Origin: Prasinococcaceae sp. CCMP 1430
Lineage: Eukaryota; Plantae; Prasinodermophyta
Assembly (NCBI GenBank): GCA_013416795.1
Contig: RQSC01001262.1
Coordinates: 8,585 to 72,584, forward strand
DNA length: 64,000 bases
Reading direction: 5' to 3'
Shown here: positions 3,375-39,636 of the stretch, piece after piece
Position numbering within the stretch: the first letter of the stretch is position 1
Layout: each line of letters begins with the position of its first letter
The notes under the pieces: generated by a model
The model's database searches: none
Told to the model about the DNA's origin: nothing
What the model saw: only the letters and a program-made list of their open reading frames with translations
Translations under genes and position numbers: made by a program

Positions 3375-4028
3375 TCAGACCAACGGAGAGGGTCCAGTGT
3401 ACGCAGCCCAATCCATATACACACAAAGGCCCTCGACACTTGGGACGAGAAGGCCCAGCAAAAGAAGGCGAAAACACCAGGTCAATCCTTCTCGCAAAGG
3501 ACGTTGTTGAATACTCATATAATCCAAAGCGATTCCTGTGAAGGATTGTTCCAAATGAAGGGCCAAAAGAGGGTAGACCAAAAGAAAGAGCATTCCAACC
3601 AAAGGGCCAAACTTGAATCCAACAAGCCAATACAGTCCAAAAAAGAGAACCATCAAGGTCCACCCAACAAGGCCTGTCTTCGCTTGGGTATGCATCCGAT
3701 CAATTTGGCGGATTTCCCCTGGGTGGGTTGAGAGAGAAGAAGAAACCAACACAAGACCTTGGTGTGGAAGGGCCCACCAAAGAAGAAGGGCTTCAAGATA
3801 AGGAACAACCAGGGTTGGATCAAGGGTTTTGGGTTGGGCAAGAAAAAACATGTACAGGTTGACCAAGAAAATGGGAACGCTTGAGGCAACCACCGTTCGA
3901 TGCGCAAGATTCCACCACTGGCTCCGAAGGTAGGACCCATACATAAAGAGAGGACGCCAAACACTCAGTTGAGAAGATGCAACACTCTCTCGATAGGGAA
4001 GAAAAACTGGACGTAGAAAATGAGACAT
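3375..4028 (-). CDS. sdh4: Succinate dehydrogenase subunit 4-like membrane anchor, unusually long (217 aa)
   Basis: C-terminal half has HLEQSFTGIALDYM (H...I..DY SdhD motif); directly downstream of sdh3; Arg codons all CGN like other genes. Confidence 0.65.
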   Translation of the reverse strand: MSHFLRPVFLPYRESVASSQLSVWRPLFMYGSYLRSQWWNLAHRTVVASSVPIFLVNLYMFFLAQPKTLDPTLVVPYLEALLLWWALPHQGLVLVSSSLSTHPGEIRQIDRMHTQAKTGLVGWTLMVLFFGLYWLVGFKFGPLVGMLFLLVYPLLALHLEQSFTGIALDYMSIQQRPLREGLTWCFRLLLLGLLVPSVEGLCVYMDWAAYTGPSPLV

Positions 4029-4050
4029 AGAAAAAAGAAAGAAAAAACCT

Positions 4051-5131: not shown

Positions 5132-6082
5132 ATGACTCTTCCTTACCCTCGTTTGCGAACCCTTCGATCTCGATCTGCTCCTGTCTTCCACACAAAAAAG
5201 CTTTCTGCAAAACTTGCACGGTTGGTTGAAAGTAAGCGTCTCGGTCGCCCACAACCATCCTTTCGAAAGCTCTCTTGGTATAAAGAGCGACTTCAAGCAC
5301 GTCAAAATGTTCGAGCCTTTTACGGGTGGATGCCAGCAACCTCTCTTGGTCGATTGATGAAAAAGGCCCGAGCACATCGACCAACCGCAGGGCCTACCTT
5401 TCTTCAAAGTCTTGAACGAATGGCCTTCATGGTTGTATATCGAGCTGGGTTTGCTCCAACACCTCGAAGTGCGCGCACCCAAGTTCGTCAGGGGTGGTAT
5501 ACTTTGAATGGAAAGGTATTGACCGCTGCGACCCGTATGCTTGATCTTGGGGATACCCTCCTTCTTCAGTCCTCCTATCATTCTGCAGCCCACGCCCACC
5601 TTCAGTGTACAAAGTATACACATACGACACAGTGGAAGGAGACCGAAAAGTCCGGCTTTCATACTGGGCTTCAACTCAGTCTTCTTGGAAATGGAGACGG
5701 AATGGTGGACCCTTCCTCTTTGGTGTGGCGTCTTCGAATGCTCAGTCTTCAAAAAAGTACACACCTTTCTTCCGGAAAGAAAGAAGGGTTTTCTCGTCTC
5801 CATACTGAAATTGGTCTTCATCAGACCTTTGTTTTGAAAGGAGATACAAGTCTTCTTCATGACAGCTGGGCTTCTCTCAAAAATCAGTCAAGCTTTTCTC
5901 CTCTTTGGTCAAAAAAAGATCGATCAACTGTTGAAAAAATCCTTCCAGGCCGATACCTTTCAGGCCACTTGGAAACCAATCCTCGGATTTTTGGACTGAC
6001 CTTGGTAAGTCCACCATCTCATTTGGTCTACCCAATGAAAGTAAACGAACGAACATTGGATCGACTCTATCACAGAAAGTGA
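5132..6082 (+). CDS. rps4: Ribosomal protein S4 (with internal insertion; may end at AGA 6074-6076)
   Basis: RQNVRAFYG, LERMAFMVVYRAGFAPT..ARTQVRQG S4 motifs. Confidence 0.9.
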   Translation: MTLPYPRLRTLRSRSAPVFHTKKLSAKLARLVESKRLGRPQPSFRKLSWYKERLQARQNVRAFYGWMPATSLGRLMKKARAHRPTAGPTFLQSLERMAFMVVYRAGFAPTPRSARTQVRQGWYTLNGKVLTAATRMLDLGDTLLLQSSYHSAAHAHLQCTKYTHTTQWKETEKSGFHTGLQLSLLGNGDGMVDPSSLVWRLRMLSLQKSTHLSSGKKEGFSRLHTEIGLHQTFVLKGDTSLLHDSWASLKNQSSFSPLWSKKDRSTVEKILPGRYLSGHLETNPRIFGLTLVSPPSHLVYPMKVNERTLDRLYHRK

Positions 6083-6146: not shown

Positions 6147-6959
6147 ATGTCTTTGTCTCTTCTTCATGCGAAAGAGAGTTTTTCACGATTGGGATGGGCA
6201 GGGTGCACCTTTGGAACAAGTCTTTGGTGTGGAACCTTCTATGTGCATGACTTTGTTGACAGTCTTTTGCTCTTTCCTTCTTTGAGCGGGACTTCTTTTG
6301 GGTTTACTGCCCACGCACCAACTGACCTTTTTGAAGTTCTTTTCCGAGTCCTTTTTTTCTCAACTTTGTGCACCTGCCTTCCAACTCTGATCTGCTTTTT
6401 TCTTGAAGCCGCTCACCCTGGGTTGGATCAAAGTGAAACTTGGACTCTTCATTCCTTTCTTTTTTTCTTTGTTTTTGGGTTTCTTTTTCTTCTTTGGGTG
6501 GGAAAAATCCTTCTTTTGAGTACAATCTCTGGATTGGTTTTTTTGTATGGAGTGGACCAGAACCATCAAGACATACATACAGGTCTCCTTCCCCTTCTTC
6601 GAGGACTTGGGTGGATCCGTTTTCTCACGCACACCCTTTCTTTGGGCTTTTTCATCTTTCTTCTTTGTGTGTGTCTTCCCTTTCTTTTGAAAAAAACAGG
6701 ATACACAGTGATTGATGGAAAGAGTCTTCGAAAACTTTGGGCACTTGGAACCCTTGGATGTTTGAGTTTGGCTCTCCCAACCCCAGACGTTTTTCTCGGT
6801 CTTTTGGGAATCTGGATAGGCTTTCTCTTTCTCTTTGAAATCAGTCTGGGTTTTCTTTTGTACACACAGATCCGTCAGACTGTCCGAAAGACTTTCTCTT
6901 TCCAAGAAAGTAGTTTATTTATATATTTTTTATATAAGTGGGTTTCTTCTTTCGGATGA
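6147..6959 (+). CDS. tatC: Twin-arginine translocase TatC (mttB); may end at TTA 6915-6917
   Basis: H.KE...R N-terminal motif, PTDLF, six hydrophobic segments, LPTPD; ORF tail overlaps trnS(TGA) antisense. Confidence 0.8.
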   Translation: MSLSLLHAKESFSRLGWAGCTFGTSLWCGTFYVHDFVDSLLLFPSLSGTSFGFTAHAPTDLFEVLFRVLFFSTLCTCLPTLICFFLEAAHPGLDQSETWTLHSFLFFFVFGFLFLLWVGKILLLSTISGLVFLYGVDQNHQDIHTGLLPLLRGLGWIRFLTHTLSLGFFIFLLCVCLPFLLKKTGYTVIDGKSLRKLWALGTLGCLSLALPTPDVFLGLLGIWIGFLFLFEISLGFLLYTQIRQTVRKTFSFQESSLFIYFLYKWVSSFG

Positions 6960-7035
6960 AGAGGGATTCGAACCCCCGATACTTCCGTATGTCAGTTTTC
7001 AAAACTGATGCCTTCGACCACTCGGCCATTCATCC
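6953..7035 (-). tRNA. trnS: tRNA-Ser(TGA)
   Basis: Anticodon arm TCAGT-TTTGAAA-ACTGA; long variable arm. Confidence 0.92.
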
Positions 7036-7044
7036 AAATCAAGG

Positions 7045-7116
7045 TGGGTTCAGTAGGACTCGAACCTACGGCCTGTCGGTTAAAAGCCGATTGCTCTCCC
7101 ACTGAGCTATGAACCC
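7045..7116 (-). tRNA. trnK: tRNA-Lys(TTT)
   Basis: Anticodon loop CTTTTAA; acceptor GGGTTCA/TGAACCC. Confidence 0.92.
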
Positions 7117-7191
7117 TCAATAAGAGTACAATCTTTCTTTGAAGAAAGGATGGTTTTGCTTGTATGTGTACAAAAAAGAAGGAAGAAAAAC

Positions 7192-7273
7192 TACGAATAG
7201 AGGGACTCGAACCCCCAAGGCGCAAGCCACTGGTTCCTAAAACCAGCGTGTCTACCGATTTCACCATATTCGC
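7192..7273 (-). tRNA. trnL: tRNA-Leu(TAG)
   Basis: Anticodon arm CTGGT-TTTAGGA-ACCAG; long variable arm. Confidence 0.92.
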
Positions 7274-7325
7274 ATCCGGAAACTCCGGTGTCTTTGTACA
7301 AAGACAGATCCATCTTCTGAAGAAA

Positions 7326-7556
<231 letters not shown>

Positions 7557-7743
7557 TCAAAAAAAAGGTCAAGAAAGTCTCCTTCCTTAGGAAACGCCGT
7601 ACAGAAAGGGTAGAGGGTTTCTTTTCACACGAATACAAAAAAAAAGAAGAAAGACTTCTTTTCAAAAAATCATTTTTTCTCTATTAGGCGGTTACAAAAG
7701 AAAAAACCTTCTTTTCAAATCTTTCTGTTTTTTACCTTGGTTT

Positions 7744-8643
7744 TCACATTCCAAGTCGAAGAGGTCGAACCTTGGTTTTTCGCCGCTTTCGTCGTTGAGC
7801 GGGAAGACGACATCCATTATGGGGTGTTTTCTTGACAAAAAGGGTTCCAACCTTTTTAAAAGTCGGATGACTTCCTTCCTTTCGGGAAGCCTTCCAATGA
7901 CGTTGAACAACCTTCATAATCCCTGCTTGGGCTGCAGACCCAGATCGACCCGAACCAGAGAGAACCAAAAGGAAGGATTTCATTCCACCTTGAAAGGCTT
8001 CCTTGGCCATTTTCATTCCAAGAGCAAAGGCTGGGTGTGTCAGTCGTTGTTTTTGGATGAACCCAAGACTTCCAGTTGATGCATGGGAAAAGGATCGCCC
8101 CCAAATGTCGGTAATTCCAAGAAAACAGTTATTATAGACGGTTGTCACATGGAGACACCCATACGCAGGAAACCGGGTTTTTTGGTCCGGATAAAAGCGA
8201 GCGTGAAACCGGGCTTGTTCTTTATGCAAAAGATAGGTTTTTTTTCCTTCCTGTCCTTCCAAAGTAGGAAGGTTTTCTGAAAACTGAGGGTTTTGAACTC
8301 GAGCTTGTGCACTCAGAAGGATTGGAAAAACATCCTTCTTTCCCTCTGCCAAACTTTGGTTTTTCTCCGAAACAGAACCAAGAAGATTCACAGACTCTGT
8401 GTACAAGGTTTGAAGATTGGTTTGGTAGGAAGTATATGGTTTCTGGAAAGAAACCCCATACCAAGAATTCAAACGAGAGGAAGAAAGACTTCCTGAGGGT
8501 GACCATCGACGACGAAGCAAAAATCGGCGAGCCTTTTTCGCTCGGAGCCGGAGACTTTGAAAAGCAAAGAATCGAAGGTTTGCATGGTTCGAACCCTGGG
8601 CTTGGAATTTTTTTTGAAAGGATAGGTCTGAAGAAAAAGACAT
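7744..8643 (-). CDS. rps11: Ribosomal protein S11 with long N-terminal extension
   Basis: HVTTVYNNCF..TD, ASTGSLGF, TPHNGCRLP. Confidence 0.9.
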   Translation of the reverse strand: MSFSSDLSFQKKFQAQGSNHANLRFFAFQSLRLRAKKARRFLLRRRWSPSGSLSSSRLNSWYGVSFQKPYTSYQTNLQTLYTESVNLLGSVSEKNQSLAEGKKDVFPILLSAQARVQNPQFSENLPTLEGQEGKKTYLLHKEQARFHARFYPDQKTRFPAYGCLHVTTVYNNCFLGITDIWGRSFSHASTGSLGFIQKQRLTHPAFALGMKMAKEAFQGGMKSFLLVLSGSGRSGSAAQAGIMKVVQRHWKASRKEGSHPTFKKVGTLFVKKTPHNGCRLPAQRRKRRKTKVRPLRLGM

Positions 8644-8678
8644 GAAAGAAAAAAATCAAAAACAAAGAGAAAAAACCT

Positions 8679-9059
8679 TTATTTACTCACTTTTTTTCGA
8701 AAAAGATTTGTTTTCCGAAAGGTTCGAGCATTTGATCGTGTTCGTTGACCACGACAGGGAAGCCCACTTCGGTGTCGAAATCCTCGATATGAGGAGGTTT
8801 CCACAAGAGTTTGAAGGTTTTTAAAATGGGCCCGCTTCAAAGCATAGGCCCCCGGATAGAGTGCTTCTCCAAGGGCTGTCAATTGCATGGAATGTTCTTT
8901 GGAAAGTGCAGACAAAGGGAGGGTTGGAAGAACACCGAGAACTGCACAATATTTTTGTACACTTTGATGGCCGATCCCATAAAGAGATCGAAGGGCATGG
9001 TCAAGAGAGGTTGAAGAGGGAAAAGACTGGCCCAAAAGATTTGTTGTAGGTGTTGGCAT
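8679..9059 (-). CDS. rps13: Ribosomal protein S13
   Basis: YGIG, SYRGFRHRSGLPCRGQRTRSNART. Confidence 0.95.
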   Translation of the reverse strand: MPTPTTNLLGQSFPSSTSLDHALRSLYGIGHQSVQKYCAVLGVLPTLPLSALSKEHSMQLTALGEALYPGAYALKRAHFKNLQTLVETSSYRGFRHRSGLPCRGQRTRSNARTFRKTNLFRKKVSK

Positions 9060-9141
9060 ACAGCGAAAAAAGAAAGACTCACCTTTCCATAAAAGGAAAG
9101 AATTTTTTTGAAAGTTTTTTAAAGTGTAGAAAGAAAGAGAA

Positions 9142-9630
9142 TTATTTCTTTTTCCCTTCACGAAGGGTATACAAAACGCCTTCAACACGAACACCCTTTG
9201 CTTTATAAGGATCGGGTCGACGAAGGTCCCGAAGGTGAGCGCCCACAGATCCAACAATACCTGGGTGAAGACCATACAAAACAAGGGTTGTTGGACTTTC
9301 AATATGAAGCATCCAATCTTCTCCATGGGGAAGAAGAGTATCGTGAGAGTATCCAACCTTTACCCGAGTCGAACAAGGGGTTTGATCAGCTTTAAACCCA
9401 GTTCCAACAAGGTCAAAGGCTTTTCGACTTCCAACCTGAAGATGGTGAATGCTTGTTTCAAGAACACGAAGGCTTCGTGGATTGGTACACAAAAGGTTTC
9501 GCCCAGAAAGTGTAATCTCTCCTTCACAATCGACAAGAAGGGACCCGAGAGGTCCAGTGAGAAGACCATGGTGAGATCCAAACATATGAAGGCTTACATC
9601 AGGCGGAAGACTAAACACAAAGGGAGGCAT
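9142..9630 (-). CDS. rpl6: Ribosomal protein L6
   Basis: LVGTGFKA, VGYSH, RRPDPYKAKGV. Confidence 0.92.
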   Translation of the reverse strand: MPPFVFSLPPDVSLHMFGSHHGLLTGPLGSLLVDCEGEITLSGRNLLCTNPRSLRVLETSIHHLQVGSRKAFDLVGTGFKADQTPCSTRVKVGYSHDTLLPHGEDWMLHIESPTTLVLYGLHPGIVGSVGAHLRDLRRPDPYKAKGVRVEGVLYTLREGKKK

Positions 9631-9784
9631 ACGAAAGACGAAGGGTTCTCTTTGTCGGTCAGACAAAGGAGGAAAAAGAGGTCTACAAAGAATGTGTAAA
9701 AGAAAGAAAGGTTTTTTCTCTCATGCAAAAAAACAAAAATATATGAAGGTCAGAATCAAAGACCTTTCAAAGAAGAAAAGAATC

Positions 9785-10180
9785 TTATGATCCATTCACT
9801 TCAAGAAGGTGCTCCCCTCCTAGGTTCAAGATCCAAGCTTCTGTATGTGAAAGAATCCCCTGGTCAGTCGAAAGAACCTTCAGATTCCAATAGGGTGTTC
9901 CCTGATCGAGTTGGCGTGCTCGAAGGTACACTCGTTTTTGGGATTTAGAGATCCGACGAATAGTACGCAGAGCAGGTTTCCCATCCACATATCGAAGGGT
10001 TGCCACACAAAGGTTTTTTTCAAGGATCCACCCATGAAGAAGACCATGAGAGGAAAGAAGACTGAGGATTGCAGAATTTTGAGCAGTGTGCGGAAGAGAG
10101 ACCTTTGTTTGTTTCAAGGTTGCTCCTGTGCTCAGTGCGGTGACAAGAGCATCCAAAGGTTGGTGTCCAAAGTACTTCAT
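9785..10180 (-). CDS. rps8: Ribosomal protein S8
   Basis: RISK..KRVY, VLSTDQGILS..EA...LGGE. Confidence 0.92.
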   Translation of the reverse strand: MKYFGHQPLDALVTALSTGATLKQTKVSLPHTAQNSAILSLLSSHGLLHGWILEKNLCVATLRYVDGKPALRTIRRISKSQKRVYLRARQLDQGTPYWNLKVLSTDQGILSHTEAWILNLGGEHLLEVNGS

Positions 10181-10279
10181 AAAGAGAAAAGAGAGTCTGC
10201 TTCTTTGAGGGTTCAGACGAAAAAAAAAGAAAAATATGAAAAAGAAGAAAGAAAGATCAACCCAAGAAAAAGGTCTCAC

Positions 10280-10621
10280 TCAGTTTCGCTTCAAGAACCC
10301 TGGAATCTGGCCACGATTGGCAAGGCGACGAAGGCTGTGTCGACTCAACCGAGTTTTTGAAAAAACTCCACGTCCTCGACCCGTGAGTGTACATCGGTTT
10401 CGCACACGGGTTGCTGAAGTGTTGCGATCCAGAGAAGCAAGGTAAAGGCCAACCCCGTATCGATAGTCCGCTGGAAGACGAAGGTTCTTCATCAAAGACC
10501 GGAGAAGTCGACGGAAGAACCCCTGTGTACGAACCTTTTCTCGACGAAGACGGTCAGTGGTGACCTTTCCTTTTCCCGGAAGTCGAGCAATTTCATAGAG
10601 ATGAAAGCCTTTGAGTGCCAT
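10280..10621 (-). CDS. rps14: Ribosomal protein S14
   Basis: [20 protein letters not shown]. Confidence 0.95.
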
Positions 10622-10680
10622 AGTAGAAAAAATAAAGCCGGAGATTCTTTGAAGATTTTTGAAGGCTTTCTTTGAATGTA

Positions 10681-11259
10681 CCTTTGAACAGCCTTCTCAG
10701 GAAGGAGAGGAAATTGACGTTCCGTCAAATATCGATACCCCTCTTCCTTTGTTGTTGTTGGTGTGTGAATACACACTTGAAGGTAAAACCCTTCTTCCAA
10801 AAGAGGTTTCAAAGGCTCGAGTTCTGGACAAGAGTCCAAAGAATTCAAAGTAAAAGAAAGGTCGCCCTGAAGGTTCAATCCCGAAAGAGGAATTCCCTGA
10901 AAGGTTGGGTCCAAAGGGAAAAAAGTGTGGATGCATCGGGAAAGAAAGCTTTCAGCATACTCCCCCTTCAAAGAAAGTGTAAATCCAAGAAGGTCGTTTT
11001 TTCGAAGATGGAAAGAAGCATGATGATTTTCTGCTTGCGCACTTTCAGGGTAGATTCCTGTAAGAAAACTCATGAGTTTCAAAAAACGAATCCCTTTTTT
11101 TGGATCAGATGCCAAGGTTTTTTCTGTACAATGAAGAGAAACCTGGAGAGGGCCGGTCACCTTTCCAGTATTCAAAAGACTGTCGTACACGCACACAGTT
11201 TTTCCATGTGCATGAAGGCGAGACATCAAGGGGTAGGGTGTGTAGGCGTAGGGTGTCAT
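10681..11259 (-). CDS. rpl5: Ribosomal protein L5 (192 aa if AGG 10681-10683 terminates; standard-code ORF runs on to 10492, overlapping rps14)
   Basis: [25 protein letters not shown]; position rpl14-rpl5-rps14-rps8-rpl6 as in the spc operon. Confidence 0.85.
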
Positions 11260-11291
11260 AAAAAGCACAAAAAAAGAGAAGGTCAAATCTT

Positions 11292-11666
11292 TCACAAAAT
11301 TCGGGGTGAAAGACTGAGAATTTTCGTATGTTCACGCCGAAGTTCAACTCCTGCTTGTGTATGAACTCGGGTGCCCAAAGGCCCGCCTTGAGCATTCAAC
11401 AACACACAGGCGTTATACCCCTGGGTCACAGAACTTCCATCTGAACGTTGGGATGGTTTCAAAGTATTGACAATAACTGCCTTGTACATTGAACCAAGAC
11501 GAACTTTAGGGTTCTGAATCTTTGGACTCAAAGACCGAACACTCACAAGAATGGTGGCACCCACGCTTCCATATCCCTTTGGTTGGACTCCATAGACTTT
11601 GAGACACCGAACCTTTCGGGCTCCAGAGTTATCAACAACGTGTAGTCGACTGCCTGTAATGATCAT
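11292..11666 (-). CDS. rpl14: Ribosomal protein L14
   Basis: MI..GSRL.VVDNSGARKVRC, RSDGS, GTRV. Confidence 0.95.
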   Translation of the reverse strand: MIITGSRLHVVDNSGARKVRCLKVYGVQPKGYGSVGATILVSVRSLSPKIQNPKVRLGSMYKAVIVNTLKPSQRSDGSSVTQGYNACVLLNAQGGPLGTRVHTQAGVELRREHTKILSLSPRIL

Positions 11667-11707
11667 AAAGAGAAAAAAGAAAGGAAAAAAAGAAGGAAAA
11701 ACCCAGG

Positions 11708-12148
11708 TCAGTTTTCCGTTCCCCACTCGGCTTTTTTCTGAGAACGATCAATAAACCGAAGAGGGACTTTAAACTTTTCTGACAAAAGAGCACAGGCCTC
11801 CTGAGCTGCGGTCTTGGAAACCCGGCTCATTTCGAAAAGAACTTCTCCTTTTCGAACACGAGCAATCCAATGATGAGGGTTCCCTTTTCCCTTTCCCATT
11901 CGTACTTCTTGGGGCTTTCGTGTGACAAGGACGTCTGGAAAGACTCGAATATAGAGTTTTCCTTGACGCTTCAAAGTTCGGGTAATCACACGACGGGCAG
12001 CTTCAAGGGAACGAGCTGGAAGTTTACAAGGGTGGAGTGCTTGAATCCCATAAATCCCAAACATCAAATCTCCTGTGGTTGCAGTTTTCTGAAAGCTTCC
12101 CTTCATTTTCTGATATTTTCGAAAGGGTGTTCGTTTTGGTTGAAGCAT
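11708..12148 (-). CDS. rpl16: Ribosomal protein L16
   Basis: QPKRTPFRK, IRVFPD, EVRMGKGKG. Confidence 0.96.
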   Translation of the reverse strand: MLQPKRTPFRKYQKMKGSFQKTATTGDLMFGIYGIQALHPCKLPARSLEAARRVITRTLKRQGKLYIRVFPDVLVTRKPQEVRMGKGKGNPHHWIARVRKGEVLFEMSRVSKTAAQEACALLSEKFKVPLRFIDRSQKKAEWGTEN

Positions 12149-12266
12149 ACAAAAGAAAGAAAGGAAAAAGGAGGCAAAAGAAACCACACATACTTTCCCT
12201 CCATACGGGGAAAGGGTGAGAAAGGAAAAACCTTACGTACTAGAATGTTTCAAAAAAACCTTTCTT

Positions 12267-13919
12267 TCAAGAAAAAAATCTACAAAAGATTCTTTGGTGA
12301 GAAACAAAGTGGGAGGAAGGAAAGGAAGTCCAAAGAGAAGAGTCTACCTTTGATTCAAGGCTTTTTAAAAAGGGGTTTTTCTCTGTTGTATCCTTGGTTG
12401 GAGCAGTATGAATCCATACTTTTACCCCAATTGTTCCTCGTTTGGTATAGGCAAGAGACTGGCTATATCCAATCTGGGCAGACAAAGTACTCAAGGGTGT
12501 TGATCCAAACTTTTTGACAATGGTTTGTTTTTTCCCTCCACCCTGTTTTCCGAGGGGACCAGACACTCGAAGGCGGAGGCCAAGAATACGGTTTGAAAGA
12601 AGACTATCAGACCCGATCTGCCCTTTGAAACCTTCCTGAGAAAGGGAAGGTTGGGTTTTTGTGTACAAGGTCCCCAACCGACCTGTAATTGCACGAGGTG
12701 AAATTCGATGTTCAAAGGCAAGAGCGATTCCTTTCGAAAGAAGGTCAGGGTGGGCCAAAAGGTCTTTTGCTTTATGAAATCGAAGGTCCACACGTTGGCC
12801 ACTATAGGCTTCCAACCCTTGAAGGAAGACCCGAAGAGAGGGACCCCCAGAAAGACGACCAAAAGGTCGTCCAAGAACCCCACTTCCCTTTGTTTTTCGG
12901 ACGGGGTTTTGAGAACTCTCCTTCTGAGGCGGGAAAAAAAAGGAAGTATGTTGAAGAAGGGTGGTTTTTTCAGAAAGGGAAGGGTTCAACCCTTTCCAAG
13001 TCGATCCAGAGAGAGTTTCAAGACCAGTGTTTTCCAAAGGTTTCAGACCATGGAAAACCAAAGGTTTTTGAAGACTGGTTCGCATATGTTTCTGAATCCA
13101 CTGGGATCGATTTTTCAAAGATTGAAGGTAGGGTGTGTGAAGATTCTTTCCCAAGGTCAAAAGGCCCTGAAGATGAAAGCTTTCTGTTGAAAGAGAAAGG
13201 TTCGCCGTTTTTTGGACCTTTCCATACCCAAAGAGGTGGGTCGCACTCAAGGTTGAGGAAGGTGTGACAATCCGACGCAACTTACTTTCCTTTCGGTCAG
13301 CAAGGGCCGGATGAAGGGCTGTTTGGGTTGCTCGATATCCAAGACTCATTCGACCTTGTTCAGCGTCTGCAAGACAACTCAAGGCACTCAAAACACGAAC
13401 CCGGGAAACCAAAGAGCTTGAAGACTGAAGACTCTGAAGAGAACGATGGTCTTGGACACTTCCCTGTCCAAAAAGAAGAAGGGTTGCAAGTTCTCGATGA
13501 TTTCGTCCAACGTGGGCCAAAAGAGAACCTTCCTGACTTCGACGGAAAAGTGTGTGGGCCCAAAAGGTTTTGATTCGCTGGGCAGAAAAAGAGAATCCTT
13601 GGGAGTGGATTTGGTTGGAAGCCTTATTTTGCCGAGGCAACCGCCCTCGCTCTCGATTCTTTCGTCGATTCTTTGGTCGAGTGTCTTCAAAAAGAGTGTT
13701 TTTTGTATACAAAGTATCAATTCGCACACCGTTTGACCCGCGTCGAATAATCGAAGGTCCCGGAATACATTGAAGAGCCTTCAGATAGGCTTCAATCTGA
13801 AAACGAAGGCCTCGATCTTGAGCAAGAAGGGACCCAAAACCTTCTTTTCCTGTCCAAAGGGACTCGTGTTTTTGATGCAACCCAAGACGAAGAGAAAGTG
13901 GGTGGGTTTTTGATGCCAT
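12267..13919 (-). CDS. rps3: Ribosomal protein S3 with large central insertion (may end at AGA 12291-12293)
   Basis: KTHPLSLRLG N-terminus; GLRLRVSGPL, GTIGVKVWI C-terminus. Confidence 0.92.
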   Translation of the reverse strand: MASKTHPLSLRLGLHQKHESLWTGKEGFGSLLAQDRGLRFQIEAYLKALQCIPGPSIIRRGSNGVRIDTLYTKNTLFEDTRPKNRRKNRERGRLPRQNKASNQIHSQGFSFSAQRIKTFWAHTLFRRSQEGSLLAHVGRNHRELATLLLFGQGSVQDHRSLQSLQSSSSLVSRVRVLSALSCLADAEQGRMSLGYRATQTALHPALADRKESKLRRIVTPSSTLSATHLFGYGKVQKTANLSLSTESFHLQGLLTLGKNLHTPYLQSLKNRSQWIQKHMRTSLQKPLVFHGLKPLENTGLETLSGSTWKGLNPSLSEKTTLLQHTSFFFPPQKESSQNPVRKTKGSGVLGRPFGRLSGGPSLRVFLQGLEAYSGQRVDLRFHKAKDLLAHPDLLSKGIALAFEHRISPRAITGRLGTLYTKTQPSLSQEGFKGQIGSDSLLSNRILGLRLRVSGPLGKQGGGKKQTIVKKFGSTPLSTLSAQIGYSQSLAYTKRGTIGVKVWIHTAPTKDTTEKNPFLKSLESKVDSSLWTSFPSSHFVSHQRIFCRFFS

Positions 13920-14272: not shown

Positions 14273-14686
14273 TTAGACTGTATACAGGGGGGTTGGACTC
14301 ACAATGGAAAAGGAAAGTTCAACTCCATTTCCAGGAATATCCAAAGAACCCATCAAAACTTCCTGAAAAGCTTGAACATTGGTTCCAACTGGAAGAGTAA
14401 AACTGAGTGTTTGTGTATAGGTATGATCCTGCCATTTTTCTTGGGACTTTTTATGAACAAAGGGTCCTCGAAGAAGAGCGTGGGTGTGGAGAGAGTGTGA
14501 AGAAAAGCTTTCACAAAGAGAAAGGCCCAAGACTCCCCCTTGGTGTTCAAGACTTCGAACACAGTATGTGAGAGAAGACCGTGTTTTTGCATGCACGCGG
14601 ATTGTGCATTGGAAAAAGCAAGGTTCTTTTGTAGATGGAAGAAGGTCTTGAACCTGACGTTGATACGCTTGAAGACGAAAACTCAT
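14273..14686 (-). CDS. rps10: Ribosomal protein S10
   Basis: LLRGPFVHKKSQEKW resembles the S10 motif (V)LRSPHVHKKSREQF; position before rps19. Confidence 0.8.
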   Translation of the reverse strand: MSFRLQAYQRQVQDLLPSTKEPCFFQCTIRVHAKTRSSLTYCVRSLEHQGGVLGLSLCESFSSHSLHTHALLRGPFVHKKSQEKWQDHTYTQTLSFTLPVGTNVQAFQEVLMGSLDIPGNGVELSFSIVSPTPLYTV

Positions 14687-16506: not shown

Positions 16507-16620
16507 TCAAAAAGATTGCAAACGCAAAAAAAAAGCTGGAAAACTCTCAAAGAAAGAGAAAAAAAATCTTACAGAAAAAAGAAGGAAAAACCGAGCAAAA
16601 AAAGAAAGGAAAAAGAATCT

Positions 16621-16971
16621 TCACCAATCAAGGGCACCTTTGGTCCACTCGTAGACGAATCCCACGGTCAGCACACCGAGAAAGACCATCATCACATAAA
16701 ACCCAAAGATTCCTGTGTGACTGAGAGAAAGAGCCCAAGGGAAAAGGAAGGAAACCTCCAAATCAAAGATAATGAAAAGAATGGCGACCAAGTAAAACTT
16801 AATATCAAACCGGCCTCGAGCATCATCAAAGGGCTCGAACCCACACTCATAGGCAGCTTCGGTATCAATGTCTGCTCGTCGAGGTTGACCCACAAGAAGG
16901 GAGGCAGCAAGAATAGCAAGGGCAAGAACAGCGGCAATCAAGAGAAGAACAAAAACAGAACCAAAATCCAT
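16621..16971 (-). CDS. nad3: NADH dehydrogenase subunit 3 (IR copy 2)
   Basis: Identical protein to 1811-2161. Confidence 0.97.
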
Positions 16972-16981
16972 AAAAAAGATG

Positions 16982-17881
16982 TTTTTTTTCCTCTCTCCTT
17001 TTTTGTTTTCCCTTCTGAGAAAGTGGAAGAAGGGAAGAGCGTTTGCGAGTTCCTACCTATGGGAAGAGCGTCTGGGAGTTCATATGGGTAGGAAAGGGTC
17101 TCCCAGTTTTTAGACAGAAAAAAGAAAAAAGGGCTCTTTCTTCCAAAAAACATCCACGATTGCCTGAGCTTGGCGACTGTCATAGGAACATTCCCTGTGT
17201 GAGATGGTTGACTCGATTCGTGGGAAAAGCGTCTGCGAGTTCATACAGGTAGGAAGCGCGTCTGGGAGTTCAGACACAGAAAAAGCCAAGAATCTTTGGT
17301 TTCTTTTCCAGTCAGTGGGACAGAAATTTTCTTTTCTGAAAAAACTAGGTGGAAACTTGGGTTCTTTTCTAAAGTTCTTCCCCCTCGGGAATGGCTCCTA
17401 GCTTGAGCCCCGGAGTGGGAATGGTACCCACGCGAGATGGTGACTCGGTATTCCCGGAAAAAGCGTCTGCGAGTGGACACATGTGGGACTCTTTCTTCCA
17501 GAACCAACTTTTTTCAGAGAGTCTTTGTTTGGGAAGCCAAGGCTCTTTGGTTTCACCTCTATTGGCCTAAGCTTGGCTACCGAAGAACGCACGTTTCGTT
17601 TGTGAGATGGTTGACTCAATATGGGGGCGGAAGAGACAGTTTCTCTTTCCCACGGCCTTTTCTACCCTAAGCTTGGGTACTATGGCTTCTGAGCCATATG
17701 ACTAAATCGTTTGGTCGCGATAGCAGGTGAGTCGGTGAAAAGGTGGGGAAAGCGAATAAGAGTTCATACAAGTAGGAAAGGGTATGTCAGTTCATATAGA
17801 TAGGAAAGCGCATAAAAGTTCATACACAGAAAAAAAACCTTTTTTGGTATGTTCTTAAGAAAAACTCTTCCAACAAAAGTC
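16982..17881. other. 900-bp mirror copy (reversed, not complemented) of 901-1800; no functional tRNAs on either strand
   Basis: 17822-17881 equals 960->901 read backwards; 17642-17701 equals 1140->1081; 17342-17401 equals 1440->1381; 16982-17041 equals 1800->1741. Confidence 0.95.
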
Positions 17882-17896
17882 GAAGGGTTCTCTCTT

Positions 17897-18526
17897 TCAA
17901 AAGGTTTTCCAAGGAGAAGCATAATCAAAGACTCGATATTCCTGAGCGAGTTCGACAGGAGTGCTCACAACTTGTTGAAGGTCTTCGTCGTATCGAACCT
18001 CAGTAAACCCAGAGAGAGGGTAATCCTTTCGCAAGGGATGGCCCTCAAACCCATAGTCTGTGAGAAGGCGATACAGGTTTGGGTGATCCAAGGTATGGAT
18101 TCCAAACATATCCCAGTTCTCACACTCGGACCATTGGGCACTCGGATACAAATCAACCACACTCGGAAGAGACTCATGGTCATTCACAAGACAGATCACT
18201 TGAAGGCGGTGTTCCAAGGTATAGGAAAGGAGTTGGTAGACCACACCAAACCGGAGGGCTGCAGTTGGTCGATCAACCACGTTTATCGCAGTCAACGTTG
18301 TGTACTGAAGACTTTCCTCATCTCGAAGGTACCGAAGAACAACCTTCAACTGACTTGGTCGAAGGTGAATCTGAAGGTGGGTATCCTGAAGAAGGATTCC
18401 GTCCACTGAGGTTGGAAGAGCATAGGCAAGGGTAAGACCAGGTCCACCCGCAAGTTCTTGGGCTGCCTTAGGAGAAAGTTTTGAAAGAAGTCGGTCGAAT
18501 CCAGCGATTGGAAGAGTAGATGGCAT
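17897..18526 (-). CDS. nad9: NADH dehydrogenase subunit 9 (IR copy 2)
   Basis: Identical protein to 256-885. Confidence 0.96.
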   Translation of the reverse strand: MPSTLPIAGFDRLLSKLSPKAAQELAGGPGLTLAYALPTSVDGILLQDTHLQIHLRPSQLKVVLRYLRDEESLQYTTLTAINVVDRPTAALRFGVVYQLLSYTLEHRLQVICLVNDHESLPSVVDLYPSAQWSECENWDMFGIHTLDHPNLYRLLTDYGFEGHPLRKDYPLSGFTEVRYDEDLQQVVSTPVELAQEYRVFDYASPWKTF

Positions 18527-18729
18527 AAACAAAAAAACAAAGGAAAAACAAAGATGAAGGATTTTCTTTGTTGGTCAGACGAAGGGTTTCCTTGTCAGAA
18601 AGAAAAAACAAAAACCTTTTCCAAGAAAAAAGGGCTTCCGAAAAGGCGGTCAAGTATGTTTTTTTTTTAGAAGACCCTTTCTCTCGACCACCAGGATTTT
18701 CTGAAAGAGGGTTTGGGTGATCGAAAGAA

Positions 18730-18800
18730 AGGCCGTGGGCGGAGTCGAACCGCCGTTAAGAGCTTTGCAGGCTCCTGTCTTACCCCTGGACCACACGACC
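18730..18800 (-). tRNA. trnC: tRNA-Cys(GCA)
   Basis: Acceptor GGTCGTG/CACGGCC; anticodon loop CTGCAAA. Confidence 0.92.
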
Positions 18801-19655: not shown

Positions 19656-20070
19656 CGATGTCGTCTCCCTGTGTCCTCGTGCTGCAGAAGGTGCGAAGGG
19701 TTCGGCTGTTCGCCGATTAATACAGGACGCGGATGGGTTTAGAACGTCGTAAGACAGTTTGGTTTCTACCTACCGTGAGGGTACACCCTGGACTCAGACT
19801 GAGTCCAGACGTATATGTGAGAAGCTTTCACTCTAGTACGAGAGGACCGAGTGGAACGGACCTCTGGGGTGTCTGTTGTAGTCCCACTGCAAGGCAGAGA
19901 ATCTACGTCCGGAAAGGAGAAGGGCTGAGTGCGTCTGAAGCCCGAAACCAGCTTTGACACGACATATCAGCGCTGGCGGAAGACCACCGCAGAATAGGCA
20001 AACCGTGTGTCTCGGGTACACCGAAAAGCGAGTTTGTACTAAGAAGGCTCTCTACGAGTTTTTAACCCTA
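19656..20070 (+). rRNA. rnl: LSU rRNA exon 3 (E. coli ~2501 to 3' end)
   Basis: CGATGTCG, GGCTGTTCGCC, TTTAGAACGTCGT, sarcin-ricin loop AGTACGAGAGGAC; 3' end approximate. Confidence 0.93.
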
Positions 20071-21624: not shown

Positions 21625-21835
21625 GTGTGCGTTCGTCTTTGGGTCGACGACCGTTTTTCTTTTTCAAGAAAAGAAAGACTCTCTCTTCTCTCTTTGTGTG
21701 TGGGTCACCCCACTTCAAAGAAAGGAAGGCGTTGAGTCGTTGAGGAAAGACCACTCTTTCCTGCGGATTGTTCGTTCTGAAGGTTCCCGCATTCTGCCTT
21801 CATCAAAGAAGGTTTCTTCTTTGCCCCGATGTGTG
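21625..21835 (-). mobile_element. 5' piece of split group I intron L2500 with intact catalytic core, no ORF (3' boundary approximate)
   Basis: Follows exon GGCACCU; IGS CAUCGGGGC; P AAUGCGGGAA, Q AAUCCGCAG, R CUCAACGACUC, S AAGAGAGAGUCU; P3 GAAGGC/GCCUUC; 6-bp P7; P8, P9, P9.1 hairpins. Confidence 0.9.
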
Positions 21836-22057
21836 AGGTGCCAAACACTTCCGTCGATTCGAGCTCTCGGGAAGTATAAGCCTGTTATCCCCGGGGTACC
21901 TTTGATCCGTTGAGCGAAGCCCCTTCCACAAGGAAACTCCGGTTCAGTATGATCGACTTTCGTCTCTGCTCGATGTGCCCATCTTACAGTCAAGCAGGCA
22001 TAGGGCATTCTCCCCACTCGCCCGGTTGCCGTCCGGGGTGAGCCTACCTTGCATACA

Positions 22058-22097
<40 letters not shown>

Positions 22098-22388
22098 CTC
22101 CACCATGCACTGTCCACAGGGTGAGAGCGCCGGTGTGTGTGGGTAGTCTCTCACTGATGCGTGTCCTCTAGGCCGCAACCTATGGATACCGCTCCTACCT
22201 AGTCTGCGCACACAGGTCCCGACACTCAATGCAGGGCTTGAGTAAAGGTCCACGGGGTCTTCTCGCCTTACCGTGAGTACCCCGCATCTTCACGGGGACT
22301 TCAATTTCACCGAGTCCATGGTTGAGACAGCTGGCCGGTGGTGACGTGATTCATGCGGGTCGCTACTTATGCGACAAGGAATTTCGCT
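21836..22388 (-). rRNA. rnl: LSU rRNA exon 2 (E. coli ~1932-2500)
   Basis: Starts AGCGAAATTCCTTGTCG; contains GACTGGGGCGG, GGATAACAGGCT; ends GTTTGGCACCT. Confidence 0.95.
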
Positions 22389-24593: not shown

Positions 24594-24715
24594 AGATTCA
24601 GAGTGGACCACATAGAGTCTCTGAGGATCCTACTAGACCTTAAAGGGTCGTTGGTGTCCTGCGGGTGAAGATTCTTTCCCGCATAGAGTGGTCTGTTCGA
24701 AGGCAGCTTTGGTGT
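24594..24715 (-). mobile_element. 5' piece of split group I intron L1931, no ORF (3' boundary approximate)
   Basis: Follows exon CUAAGGU; IGS GCUGCCUU (P1 with U-G, P10 with 3' exon AGC); P4 UGCGG/CCGCA; R CUCAGAGACUC; P3 GACCAC/GUGGUC. Confidence 0.88.
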
Positions 24716-26562
24716 ACCTTAGTACTGTCAGTGATACAGCAGCCATTGGCCCGGTTTTCGATTTCCGGCAAACACCGGTCCTGTACAACGACGGGCATTG
24801 GGCACACGTCAGTCCCTATACGTCGTCTTTCGACTTTGCAGAGACCTGTGGTTTTAATAACCAGTCCCCGGCCACATTTTTCTGCGACTCCAGTCAGACT
24901 GGAGCCCTCCTTCTTGCGAACGTACGGAGTGAATTTGCCGAGTTCCTTAACCATGGGTCTCTCGACGCCTGAGTCTGTTCGACCCGCGCACCAGTGTCGG
25001 TTTAGGTACGGATACAGGGTTTTTGAACTTTTCCTGGACCTTCTTTTCTCAGACCTTTCTTCCCAAAGAAAAAACCTCAAAGAAAGAAAGCCGTCCTTCA
25101 AAAACATCCTCCATCAAAGTGAGACTTCTCTCATCTTCTTAGGATCCGTGTCTTCCACAGATGGTCAACAGTGCTGTGGAACCCGTGCGCATACGGCGAC
25201 GGGGATTGGCTCCCCGAGCCTCGTTACTCATGTCAGCATGCTCACTCCCGAGTCCTCCAGAAAAAGTATCCTTTTTCCTTCAAAGGAACACAGGACGCTC
25301 CGCTACCAGAACGAATCGTTCTCCGTCGTTTCGGTGGTGCCCTTCAGTCCCGAGTATGGTCGGCGCCAAAAAACTCATTCAGTGCGCTGGTACGCGATCA
25401 TCATAGAACGGCTGCTTCCAAGCCCATCTCCTGAATGTCTCTGTTTTCTGACTTCCTTGCGCACTCAGGGCACACTTTGGGACCTTAACGGACGGTCTGG
25501 GCTCTTCCCCTCTCGACCCTGGACCTTCGCGCCCAGAGTCTGTACAGATACCCACCCTTTGTCGGCCTTCGGAGTTTTCTTGGACTTCGTAAAGGTTTGG
25601 GCTCCCGTCATCCAACAAGTGCTCTACCTCCGAAAAGGAGTCTGGGTCTAGTCTACCTACATAGATTTCGCGGAGAACCAGCTATCACCAGGCTTGGTAA
25701 GCCTTTCACTCCTTTCCACCCCTCATCCGAGAATTTTGCCACATTCACCGGTTCGGTCCTCCATCGAAAGACTTTCGACTTCAACCTGGAGATGGAAAGC
25801 TCGCCTGGCTTCGGGTCGTACACCCCCTATACACAGAAAAGAAAGAAAAAACCCTTATCGCATACGCTCAAGAGAAAATCCTTTCTTTGAAAACCAAGAA
25901 AGAAGCCTTTGTAAACTCGGGTTTCCTCCTGCCTCCACCTTTGGGCTCAAGCCTTGGTTTTTTTTTGTACAGGTGAATCTACACTCGCTGACCCATTATG
26001 CAAAAGGTACGCCGTCACCATGTCTGGCTCCGACCGTTTGATGTGCACCAGGATTCAGGTTCTTTTCAAGTCCTCATTCTTCGGAAGAAGTCTTCCGGAT
26101 CGGTTCTTTTCACCCTTCCCTCACGGTACATCCTGCGCTATCGGTTCTTCTAGGTATCCAACCTTCAGAGGGTGGTCCCCCTGTCTTCCATCGGTGTGAT
26201 CCGATGTACTCATTCTTTTCTCTGTCGACCCAGTCTTTCCTGTACAGGGCTTTCACCTTCTTTGGCCCGGGATTCCACCACGGTTCAAGAAAAGAAGAAG
26301 GTCGACCTTCTTTGGGGTTTTTCACCAAAAAAAGAGAGGTTTGGTCCGGGGTCGATCACATCTACTGCCGGAGTCTCGGTTGATCAGTCTTCCTCGGGGT
26401 ACTGAGATGTTTCACTTCCCCCGGTGTTTGTTCTGTCTGAGCTTGTGCTCTTGGGAAATCAAAACTTTGTCGCGGTGTGCTAAAGTTTTGCCTTTCGTTT
26501 TGGTGTACGTCCCTTTCCTAGAAGACCAGGGCATCCCCCTGGTGCATCCTCTCTCTCTACGA
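24716..26562 (-). rRNA. rnl: LSU rRNA exon 1 (5' end to E. coli ~1931)
   Basis: GGATGCCCTGG near 5' end, GAAACATCTCAGTACC, GTACCTTTTGCATAATGG, GAACTCGGCAAA; 5' end approximate. Confidence 0.95.
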
Positions 26563-27680: not shown

Positions 27681-27753
27681 GCGCCTATAGCTCAATGGAT
27701 AGGGCGTCGCACTTCGGATGCGAAGATTGAGGGTTCGAGTCCTTCTAGGCGTA
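27681..27753 (+). tRNA. trnR: tRNA-Arg(TCG)
   Basis: Anticodon arm TCGCA-CTTCGGA-TGCGA; the only Arg tRNA found. Confidence 0.92.
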
Positions 27754-39278: not shown

Positions 39279-39636
39279 CCCCCGCTGCTCTCAGGCCCGC
39301 CCCGCGCCACCCGCCAACCGTTAGGGTCCAAAATAAAACCCTTAATGAGGTCTTAACCCTAACCCCAACGCCGGGCGGGACCCCCTGCGGCGGCCTTTTT
39401 TTTTGCGCGCGTTTTTCTTCGGTATTTTACGCGGCGAGATTTCGTGAGTTTGCATGTGAATTCGCGGCGTCGTTCCGGAAAAAGGCGGAAAATGCGCGAG
39501 GAAAAAACGAGCGGATAAGACGGCGCTGCGGCGGGGGTGCCACAGGGGCACGCGCTGCGGGCGGGGTGTGTGGGGGGCGAGGGGGGGGGAGGGAGCGAGG
39601 GAGGTGTGAGGGGCGCCCGCCTTTCGCGCGGTGAGG

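Follow-up and report, generated by a model that had tools for sequence, protein, structure and literature searches.

The two arginine codons AGA and AGG (together AGR) are absent from the interior of all mitochondrial genes in a prasinodermophyte alga, where they occur in frame only at the ends of rpl5, rps3 and rps4, which code for the ribosomal proteins L5, S3 and S4. The DNA analyzed is a stretch of 64,000 nucleotides (nt), hereafter called the window, from Prasinococcaceae sp. CCMP 1430 (GenBank assembly GCA_013416795.1, contig RQSC01001262.1, positions 8,585 to 72,584 of the forward strand). Its mitochondrial part is labeled here as Prasinoderma coloniale, CCMP1413-type lineage. Judging from the sequence comparisons described below, we favor the view that AGR has no decoder in this mitochondrion and marks functional gene ends, with translation stopping there and not at the next standard stop codon. 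AGA and AGG would then probably stop translation at the ends of rpl5, rps3 and rps4 (coordinates in Table 1).

Genes were identified by Pfam matches and their start codons were placed by homology. The 30 full gene models comprise 7,693 codons, among which we counted 325 CGN arginine codons and not a single AGA or AGG, next to 1 TTA, 3 ATA and 6 CTA. The same picture emerged when only the Pfam-matched stretches were considered (4,636 codons: AGA 0, AGG 0, CGN 173, TTA 0, ATA 2, CTA 3). This absence is not compositional, because the two other reading frames of the same 30 genes contain 475 AGR triplets (204 AGA and 271 AGG, approximately 31 per 1000), and at such a rate the probability of finding none in frame is approximately e^-242. 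Between the start codon and the next standard stop, in-frame AGR was found in the window only at the ends of the three genes named above; hence, the two codons are not strictly unassigned, since they stand in frame ahead of a standard stop in rpl5, rps3 and rps4. TTA and ATA, the tRNAs for which are also missing, do appear occasionally inside genes of the window and its relatives. AGR is therefore under a stricter exclusion than a codon that is simply rare, which is the expected pattern if AGR in frame terminates or obstructs translation.

The exclusion is not restricted to the window. Three metagenome contigs are colinear with it, namely L011 (99.1%), L018 (98.0%) and L001 (97.5%), which together with the window give four close haplotypes; the gene bodies of the three sister haplotypes contain no AGR. 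Eight contigs of more divergent relatives (approximately 75% nucleotide identity) have 0 AGR in 3,149 codons compared to 191 CGN, and all their genes terminate in TGA or TAA. Moreover, no AGR was found in the real genes of a further relative with approximately 50% identity in Rps3 and Rps4 and a guanine plus cytosine (GC) content of 37%, the AGR triplets of which are confined to open reading frames (ORFs) without homology. The zero counts in these distant lineages indicate that the ban on AGR is old and does not result from base composition.

The window covers part of the mitochondrial genome, not all of it, and the census of tRNA genes is limited accordingly. ARAGORN and Rfam reported 24 tRNA genes plus a cut trnC copy at the window start, with trnR(ucg) as the sole gene for tRNA-Arg and no UCU or CCU anticodon among the tRNA genes of the window. 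The tRNA list published for strain CCMP1220 likewise contains trnR(ucg) only, trnR(ucu) and trnR(acg) being absent, and according to the same paper the code is the standard one (Pombert et al., 2013). The preliminary description of the window had claimed that every arginine codon inside the mitochondrial genes is CGN, that AGR is terminal only, and that trnR(ucg) is present without trnR(ucu). The full census bears out all three statements, and the positions given there for the AGR codons of rpl5, rps3 and rps4 were correct throughout. Standard stop codons could be assigned to 26 mitochondrial gene ends of the window, 21 of them TGA, 5 TAA and none TAG.

At least one tRNA must be imported into this mitochondrion, because the Pfam-matched stretches contain 77 threonine codons of the forms ACA and ACG and the only tRNA-Thr gene is trnT(ggu). 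This makes room for another explanation, in which AGR would still mean arginine, as an extremely rare codon slowly decoded by a cytosolic tRNA-Arg(UCU/CCU) that is imported, so that Rpl5 would carry a 63-amino acid extension and Rps3 and Rps4 would run to their standard stops. The rpl5 frame is indeed open to a TGA in the window and in L001. Nevertheless, a decodable rare codon should sometimes be found internally, as is the case for TTA and ATA, and the more than 10,000 codons counted in the different lineages contain no AGR at all. For this reason, together with the structure of the gene ends discussed in the following, we regard decoding by an imported tRNA-Arg as unlikely.

The end of rpl5 can be compared with marine Prasinoderma-like lineages whose rpl5 is 53-74% identical and in all cases stops with TGA. 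The coding body of the window gene is alignable with these relatives through '...LLPEKAVQ', and the Pfam domain Ribosomal_L5_C ends 8 residues ahead of the AGG. This AGG aligned exactly with the TGA stop of one relative (L004/P0005), and the AGA behind it exactly with the TGA stops of four relative contigs (L002, L003, L005, L006), three of which (L002, L003, L006) read CAA or CAG followed by TGA where the window reads CAA AGA. The TGA codons of the relatives at this position point to an ancestral TGA that changed to AGA by a single substitution. In an exhaustive search, 54 of the 55 L5 homologues that aligned to within 8 or fewer residues of the query end were found to terminate between -6 and +9 residues from the AGG position. 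With 63 residues more, the window protein would be an extreme outlier. Under the standard code, the first stop in the rpl5 frame is the TGA at 10492-10494. The 63 codons from the AGG towards this TGA include 5 AGR (the AGG and AGA of Table 1 and three further AGG), 1 TTA and 2 CTA, i.e. 8/63 codons of kinds that occur 0/192 times in the body, where AGR, TTA, ATA and CTA are all missing. The corresponding tail is absent from all relatives compared and is probably untranslated in the rpl5 frame. A tail that is missing in all relatives, packed with otherwise avoided codons and exceptional in length also speaks against the imported tRNA-Arg. When rpl5 is ended at the AGG, as proposed in the preliminary description, the protein has 192 amino acids, and its 130-nt overlap with rps14 arises under the standard code only. 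That rpl5 does not have the long tail thus appears, from these alignments, well supported as a fact relevant for annotation, mechanism apart.

The four close haplotypes permit a look at selection around the AGR codons. The AGG and AGA of rpl5, the first AGA of rps3 and the AGA of rps4 are kept in 4/4 haplotypes, and 3 nonsynonymous changes fall on the 3 codons that separate AGG from AGA in rpl5. Over the shared 8.5 kb, 9/83 sites behind AGR are variable compared to 183/7,019 coding sites (Fisher p = 4e-4), and the stretches behind AGR do not differ from spacer in variability. Inside the genes, substitutions among the haplotypes are mostly found at third codon positions, as under purifying selection.

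The spacer-like evolution behind AGR would also be consistent with mRNAs that are cut at or just before AGR, as might happen between rpl5 and rps14, on which the ribosome runs off the non-stop end and is rescued, AGR never entering its A site. Non-stop mitochondrial mRNAs exist in land plants. Furthermore, AGR is frequent in the two in-frame codons right after standard stops of the window (6/52 compared to approximately 3% in the other frames), as in TGA AGA, TGA AGG or TAA AGG (886-891, 4045-4050, 8673-8678, 16615-16620), which makes AGR typical of spacer sequence; these post-stop codons may represent A/G-rich spacer or a back-up terminator. However, folding of the three gene ends gave no stem-loop better than shuffled sequence, and the ends show no other conspicuous processing signal. 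The RNA runs are available as assembled metatranscriptome contigs of environmental strains, one of which crosses the AGG/AGA region (10618-10798), where DNA carry-over is possible. Finally, AGR is invariant in the four haplotypes while its neighbors change, which suggests that the codons themselves matter. Cut mRNAs seem to us an improbable explanation of the gene ends.

The rps3 gene provides a second case. Its C-terminal sequence '...WTSFPSSHFV' is conserved with relatives; after the motif '...W-T-S-x-x-x-x-H-F-V', CCMP1220 and L002 read A and a stop codon and the window continues with S-H-Q-AGA, so that the TAA stop of both relatives lies 2 codons upstream of the window AGA. Behind this AGA, 5/24 sites are variable among the four haplotypes, a run of T differs in length and shifts the frame in L018, and in L001 the stretch shows AGA changed to ACA and TGA changed to CGA. 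These changes leave the downstream standard stop unconserved, with the TGA missing from two haplotypes and three versions running to different standard stops, which is hard to reconcile with decoding of AGR by an imported tRNA in such near-identical sequences.

The case of rps4 is different. Its relatives end with LYHN, LYHS or LYR before the stop, and the window reads LYH-AGA-AAG-TGA, so that the AGA falls on the last sense codon of the relatives or on their stop position. An Rps4 end LYHRK, as expected with an imported tRNA-Arg, is compatible with the LYHN and LYHS of the relatives. Hence, the rps4 AGA fits either reading and is uninformative alone, as had already been cautioned in the preliminary description, which considered that it could be a real arginine.

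The preliminary description had proposed AGR as the functional gene ends, a view to be abandoned if AGR occurred internally at conserved positions or if orthologues conserved the tails behind it. Neither was found. Internal AGR is missing at every position examined in the window genome, its relatives and the real genes of the 37%-GC relative, and the tails are not conserved, given that Rpl5 of the relatives stops on the AGG or AGA, Rps3 of CCMP1220 and L002 2 codons before the AGA, and Rps4 of the relatives at the AGA itself or one codon later. The proposal is hence supported. The comparison group, called prasinophyte there, is properly Prasinodermophyta.

The last codons of tatC before its TTA (6903-6917) differ among all four close haplotypes. 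The window reads CAA GAA AGT AGT, L011 CAA GAA AGG AGT, L001 CAA GAA AAA GGT and L018 AAA GGA AAA GGT. L011 has thus an in-frame AGG two codons before the TTA, which is a fourth gene end carrying AGR.

It must be mentioned that several points weigh against termination at AGR. Among the three genes, rpl5 is the sole one that strictly needs a non-standard end; standard stops follow the AGA after 8 codons in rps3 and after 2 codons in rps4 of the window. The C-terminal tails of Rps3 and Rps4 vary among relatives anyway, and the high divergence behind AGR may reflect a dispensable translated tail. Given that tRNAs are imported, a low level of imported tRNA-Arg(UCU) may exist as well.

The stop could also be made on the RNA, by C-to-U editing of the preceding CAA to UAA, or the ribosome could shift frame at a hungry AGR codon. 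CAA, a glutamine codon with a share of 2% in the total codon usage, precedes 3/4 terminal AGR, namely the AGG (CAA at 10684-10686) and AGA (10672-10674) of rpl5 and the AGA of rps3 (12294-12296); in rpl5 this CAA is ancestral, as it also stands ahead of GAA and ahead of TGA in the relatives. A -1 shift at the rps3 AGA of the window meets a TAG after 4 codons. On the other hand, the differences listed for the metatranscriptome contigs show no excess of the expected change and none at those CAA codons, the rps4 AGA is preceded by CAC instead of CAA, and no organellar C-to-U editing is known from green algae. Regarding frameshifting, no nearby stop exists in the +1 or -1 frame of rpl5, and the -1 TAG of rps3 is lost in L001. 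Both variants are considered very improbable.

An artefact, whether through faulty assembly, a pseudogene or mitochondrial DNA inserted into the nucleus, is effectively refuted. The assembly does hold one artefact, as the block at 16982-17881 is the reverse of 901-1800 (see below). Nevertheless, two independent DNA runs are identical to the window over 6495-12419 with zero differences, which means that the AGR codons are not assembly errors; the same AGR codons recur in the three independent metagenome haplotypes, and the excess of third-position substitutions is that of genes under purifying selection.

The following scenario would account for these data. In the mitochondria of the Prasinoderma clade, trnR(ucu) would have been lost and trnR(ucg) alone left, leaving AGA and AGG without decoder, and selection would since then keep AGR out of every gene body. 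In the CCMP1413-type lineage of the window, AGR would have come to mark the 3' termini where rpl5 and rps3 functionally end; it also sits at the end of rps4 and, in one haplotype, of tatC. In rpl5, the ancestral TGA would have turned into AGA by one substitution and the AGG would have arisen four codons upstream, in which case the 63-codon standard-code extension overlapping rps14 would not be made. From the lack of a decoder gene, the exclusion from gene bodies, the coincidence with stops of relatives and the lost constraint behind the codons, all of which are observed, we infer that the ribosome stops and the peptide is released at AGR. Release might be achieved by a codon-independent hydrolase (ICT1/ArfB or mtRF-R type) that rescues a ribosome stalled with an empty A site, or by an organellar release factor with relaxed recognition. 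A plausible candidate for the latter is mtRF2a, because TGA is the main stop codon (21/26) and AGA differs from it in the first base only. In a stronger version, AGA and AGG would be genuine stop codons read by an altered release factor, for example an mtRF2a that accepts UGA and AGA, which we consider possible but doubtful. If true, this would be the first code beyond the vertebrates in which AGR is a stop, and a new translation table would be required; the change would also have been caught early, with few genes switched and rpl5 showing the TGA-to-AGA substitution directly.

Two other readings were considered and rejected. Besides AGR, TTA alone is almost missing from gene bodies, and there is no trnL(uaa). 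TTA is nevertheless not accepted as a second terminator, because internal TTA was found: at 12366-12368 of the window (rps3 codon 518), where the three sister haplotypes have TTT and conserved sequence follows; in rpl16 codon 59 of L001; and in rpl5 codon 69 of L002, where L003 and L006 have CTA. TTA is more likely a rare leucine codon. Decoding of AGR as serine by tRNA-Ser(GCU), or as another amino acid, was rejected because AGR occurs at no internal position.

Table 1. Features at the AGR-bearing gene ends of the window, with neighboring rps14 and the single tRNA-Arg gene
Feature	Position	Strand	Remarks
rpl5 coding body	10684..11259	-	192 codons, from ATG 11259 to the codon before AGG
In-frame AGG of rpl5	10681..10683	-	Proposed effective rpl5 end; codon 217 of the stop-to-stop frame
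In-frame AGA of rpl5	10669..10671	-	Ancestral rpl5 stop position; codon 221 of the stop-to-stop frame
Standard-code rpl5 'tail'	10492..10680	-	59-nt spacer plus 130-nt rps14 overlap
rps14	10280..10621	-	Pfam Ribosomal_S14; downstream gene; 22 CGN, 0 AGR after ATG
rps3 coding body	12294..13919	-	To the codon before the first AGA; Pfam Ribosomal_S3_C
First in-frame AGA of rps3	12291..12293	-	Proposed effective end
rps3 post-AGA stretch	12267..12290	-	Second AGA 12279-81, TGA 12267-69; behaves as non-coding
rps4 coding body	5132..6073	+	Pfam S4; alignable with relatives through '...DRLYH'
rps4 end AGA AAG TGA	6074..6082	+	AGA 6074-76; does not decide between readings
trnR(ucg)	27681..27753	+	Sole tRNA-Arg gene; reads CGN only; ARAGORN and Rfam

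The mitochondrial DNA extends from window position 1 to approximately 39283, has 43-51% GC and carries rRNA, the 24 tRNA, respiratory and ribosomal-protein genes. A telomere-like repeat of CCCTAA type follows (39283-39400), and from approximately 39.3 kb on the sequence is nuclear with 62-70% GC. The window hence consists of two pieces joined end to end. The named homologues of the window proteins are Rps4 (P0009) and Rps3 (P0015) of P. coloniale in UniRef, with approximately 72% identity. This low value implies that the published mitogenome KF387569 (CCMP1220; Pombert et al., 2013) and CCMP1413, the strain with the sequenced nuclear genome to whose type the window belongs, represent two deeply diverged lineages. 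The species name P. coloniale seems to span deeply diverged mitochondrial lineages, several further ones of which are found in marine metagenomes.

The mitochondrial contig contains inverted repeats with nad9-trnC, nad3 and nad1-trnM. Within one otherwise inverted repeat (1-2191 versus 16591-18781), the 900 nt at 16982-17881 repeat 901-1800 exactly in reverse letter order, without complementation. Since an exact reverse is biologically impossible, this block must stem from faulty assembly; intact tRNA genes are found in the 901-1800 copy only, and the block is remote from the AGR sites. The gene for the large-subunit rRNA (rnl) is fragmented over both strands, with pieces at 19656-20049 (+), 21802-22297 (-) and 24609-26561 (-). 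A group I intron match at 21655-21888 lies among the rnl pieces, in agreement with the trans-spliced rnl introns of CCMP1220. Two ORFs of 137 codons (14276-14686, -) and 189 codons (3378-3944, -) are probably real genes, as they are conserved in the sister haplotypes and free of AGR, TTA and ATA. The 137-codon ORF lies upstream of rps19 and has a weak Ribosomal_S10 match (E = 0.001); rps10 is given as absent from the CCMP1220 mitogenome (Pombert et al., 2013).

AGR termination is so far established for vertebrate mitochondria only. In their code (NCBI table 2), AGA and AGG end the human genes MT-CO1 and MT-ND6, with release by mtRF1; the literature attributes this termination to a specialised mtRF1a paralogue, and ICT1 had been proposed earlier. 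The alga resembles vertebrate mitochondria in having no mitochondrial tRNA that reads AGR, no AGR inside genes, and AGR in frame at a few gene ends without a standard stop at that place. It differs in its independent origin in a deep green-plant lineage, in TGA being a stop and not a tryptophan codon, and in the small number of affected genes (2-4). Because mtRF1 is a vertebrate-specific paralogue, the factor acting here must be a different one. Moreover, the base before AGR is A and not U, which makes the -1 frameshift to UAG once proposed for the human genes inapplicable.

Changes from sense to stop are also known from green algae, namely UCA/UCG in Scenedesminia and UUA/UUG in Pycnococcus (Pseudoscourfieldia) and Marsupiomonadales. 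In these cases too, a sense codon without tRNA vanished from gene bodies and reappeared at the stops of homologues, as was concluded from the same kind of C-terminal alignment. Unlike the present case, serine or leucine codons are concerned and the changes are correlated with mtRF1a mutations. Reassignment of AGR from arginine to alanine or methionine was described for Sphaeropleales, Marsupiomonadales and pedinophyte-derived plastids. It likewise begins with the loss of trnR(ucu) and AGR depletion, but there AGR returned at conserved alanine or methionine sites together with a new tRNA(CCU/UCU); the window has neither internal AGR nor such a tRNA. Finally, in reduced mitogenomes unassigned codons lack their tRNA gene and are unused in gene bodies, which is also true here. 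A purely unassigned codon should be missing from reading frames altogether. AGR, in contrast, has become fixed in frame at gene ends, where it is conserved, and in rpl5 it takes the place of the standard stop. The preliminary description knew of no report of such a case for this lineage, and the literature searched indeed contains none of AGR avoidance or AGR termination in Prasinoderma or other algae.

For annotation, the standard code would yield a wrong Rpl5 (255-267 amino acids, overlapping rps14) and wrong Rps3 ends, and gene callers give the long form of rpl5 or miss the gene altogether. For the evolution of the code, Prasinoderma would represent an early, still readable stage, in which the whole clade bans internal AGR, one sub-lineage places AGR at gene ends, and sister lineages retain TGA at the same rpl5 codon. 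Hence, the route to a sense-to-stop reassignment on which a codon first becomes unassigned and only later a terminator would become directly testable.

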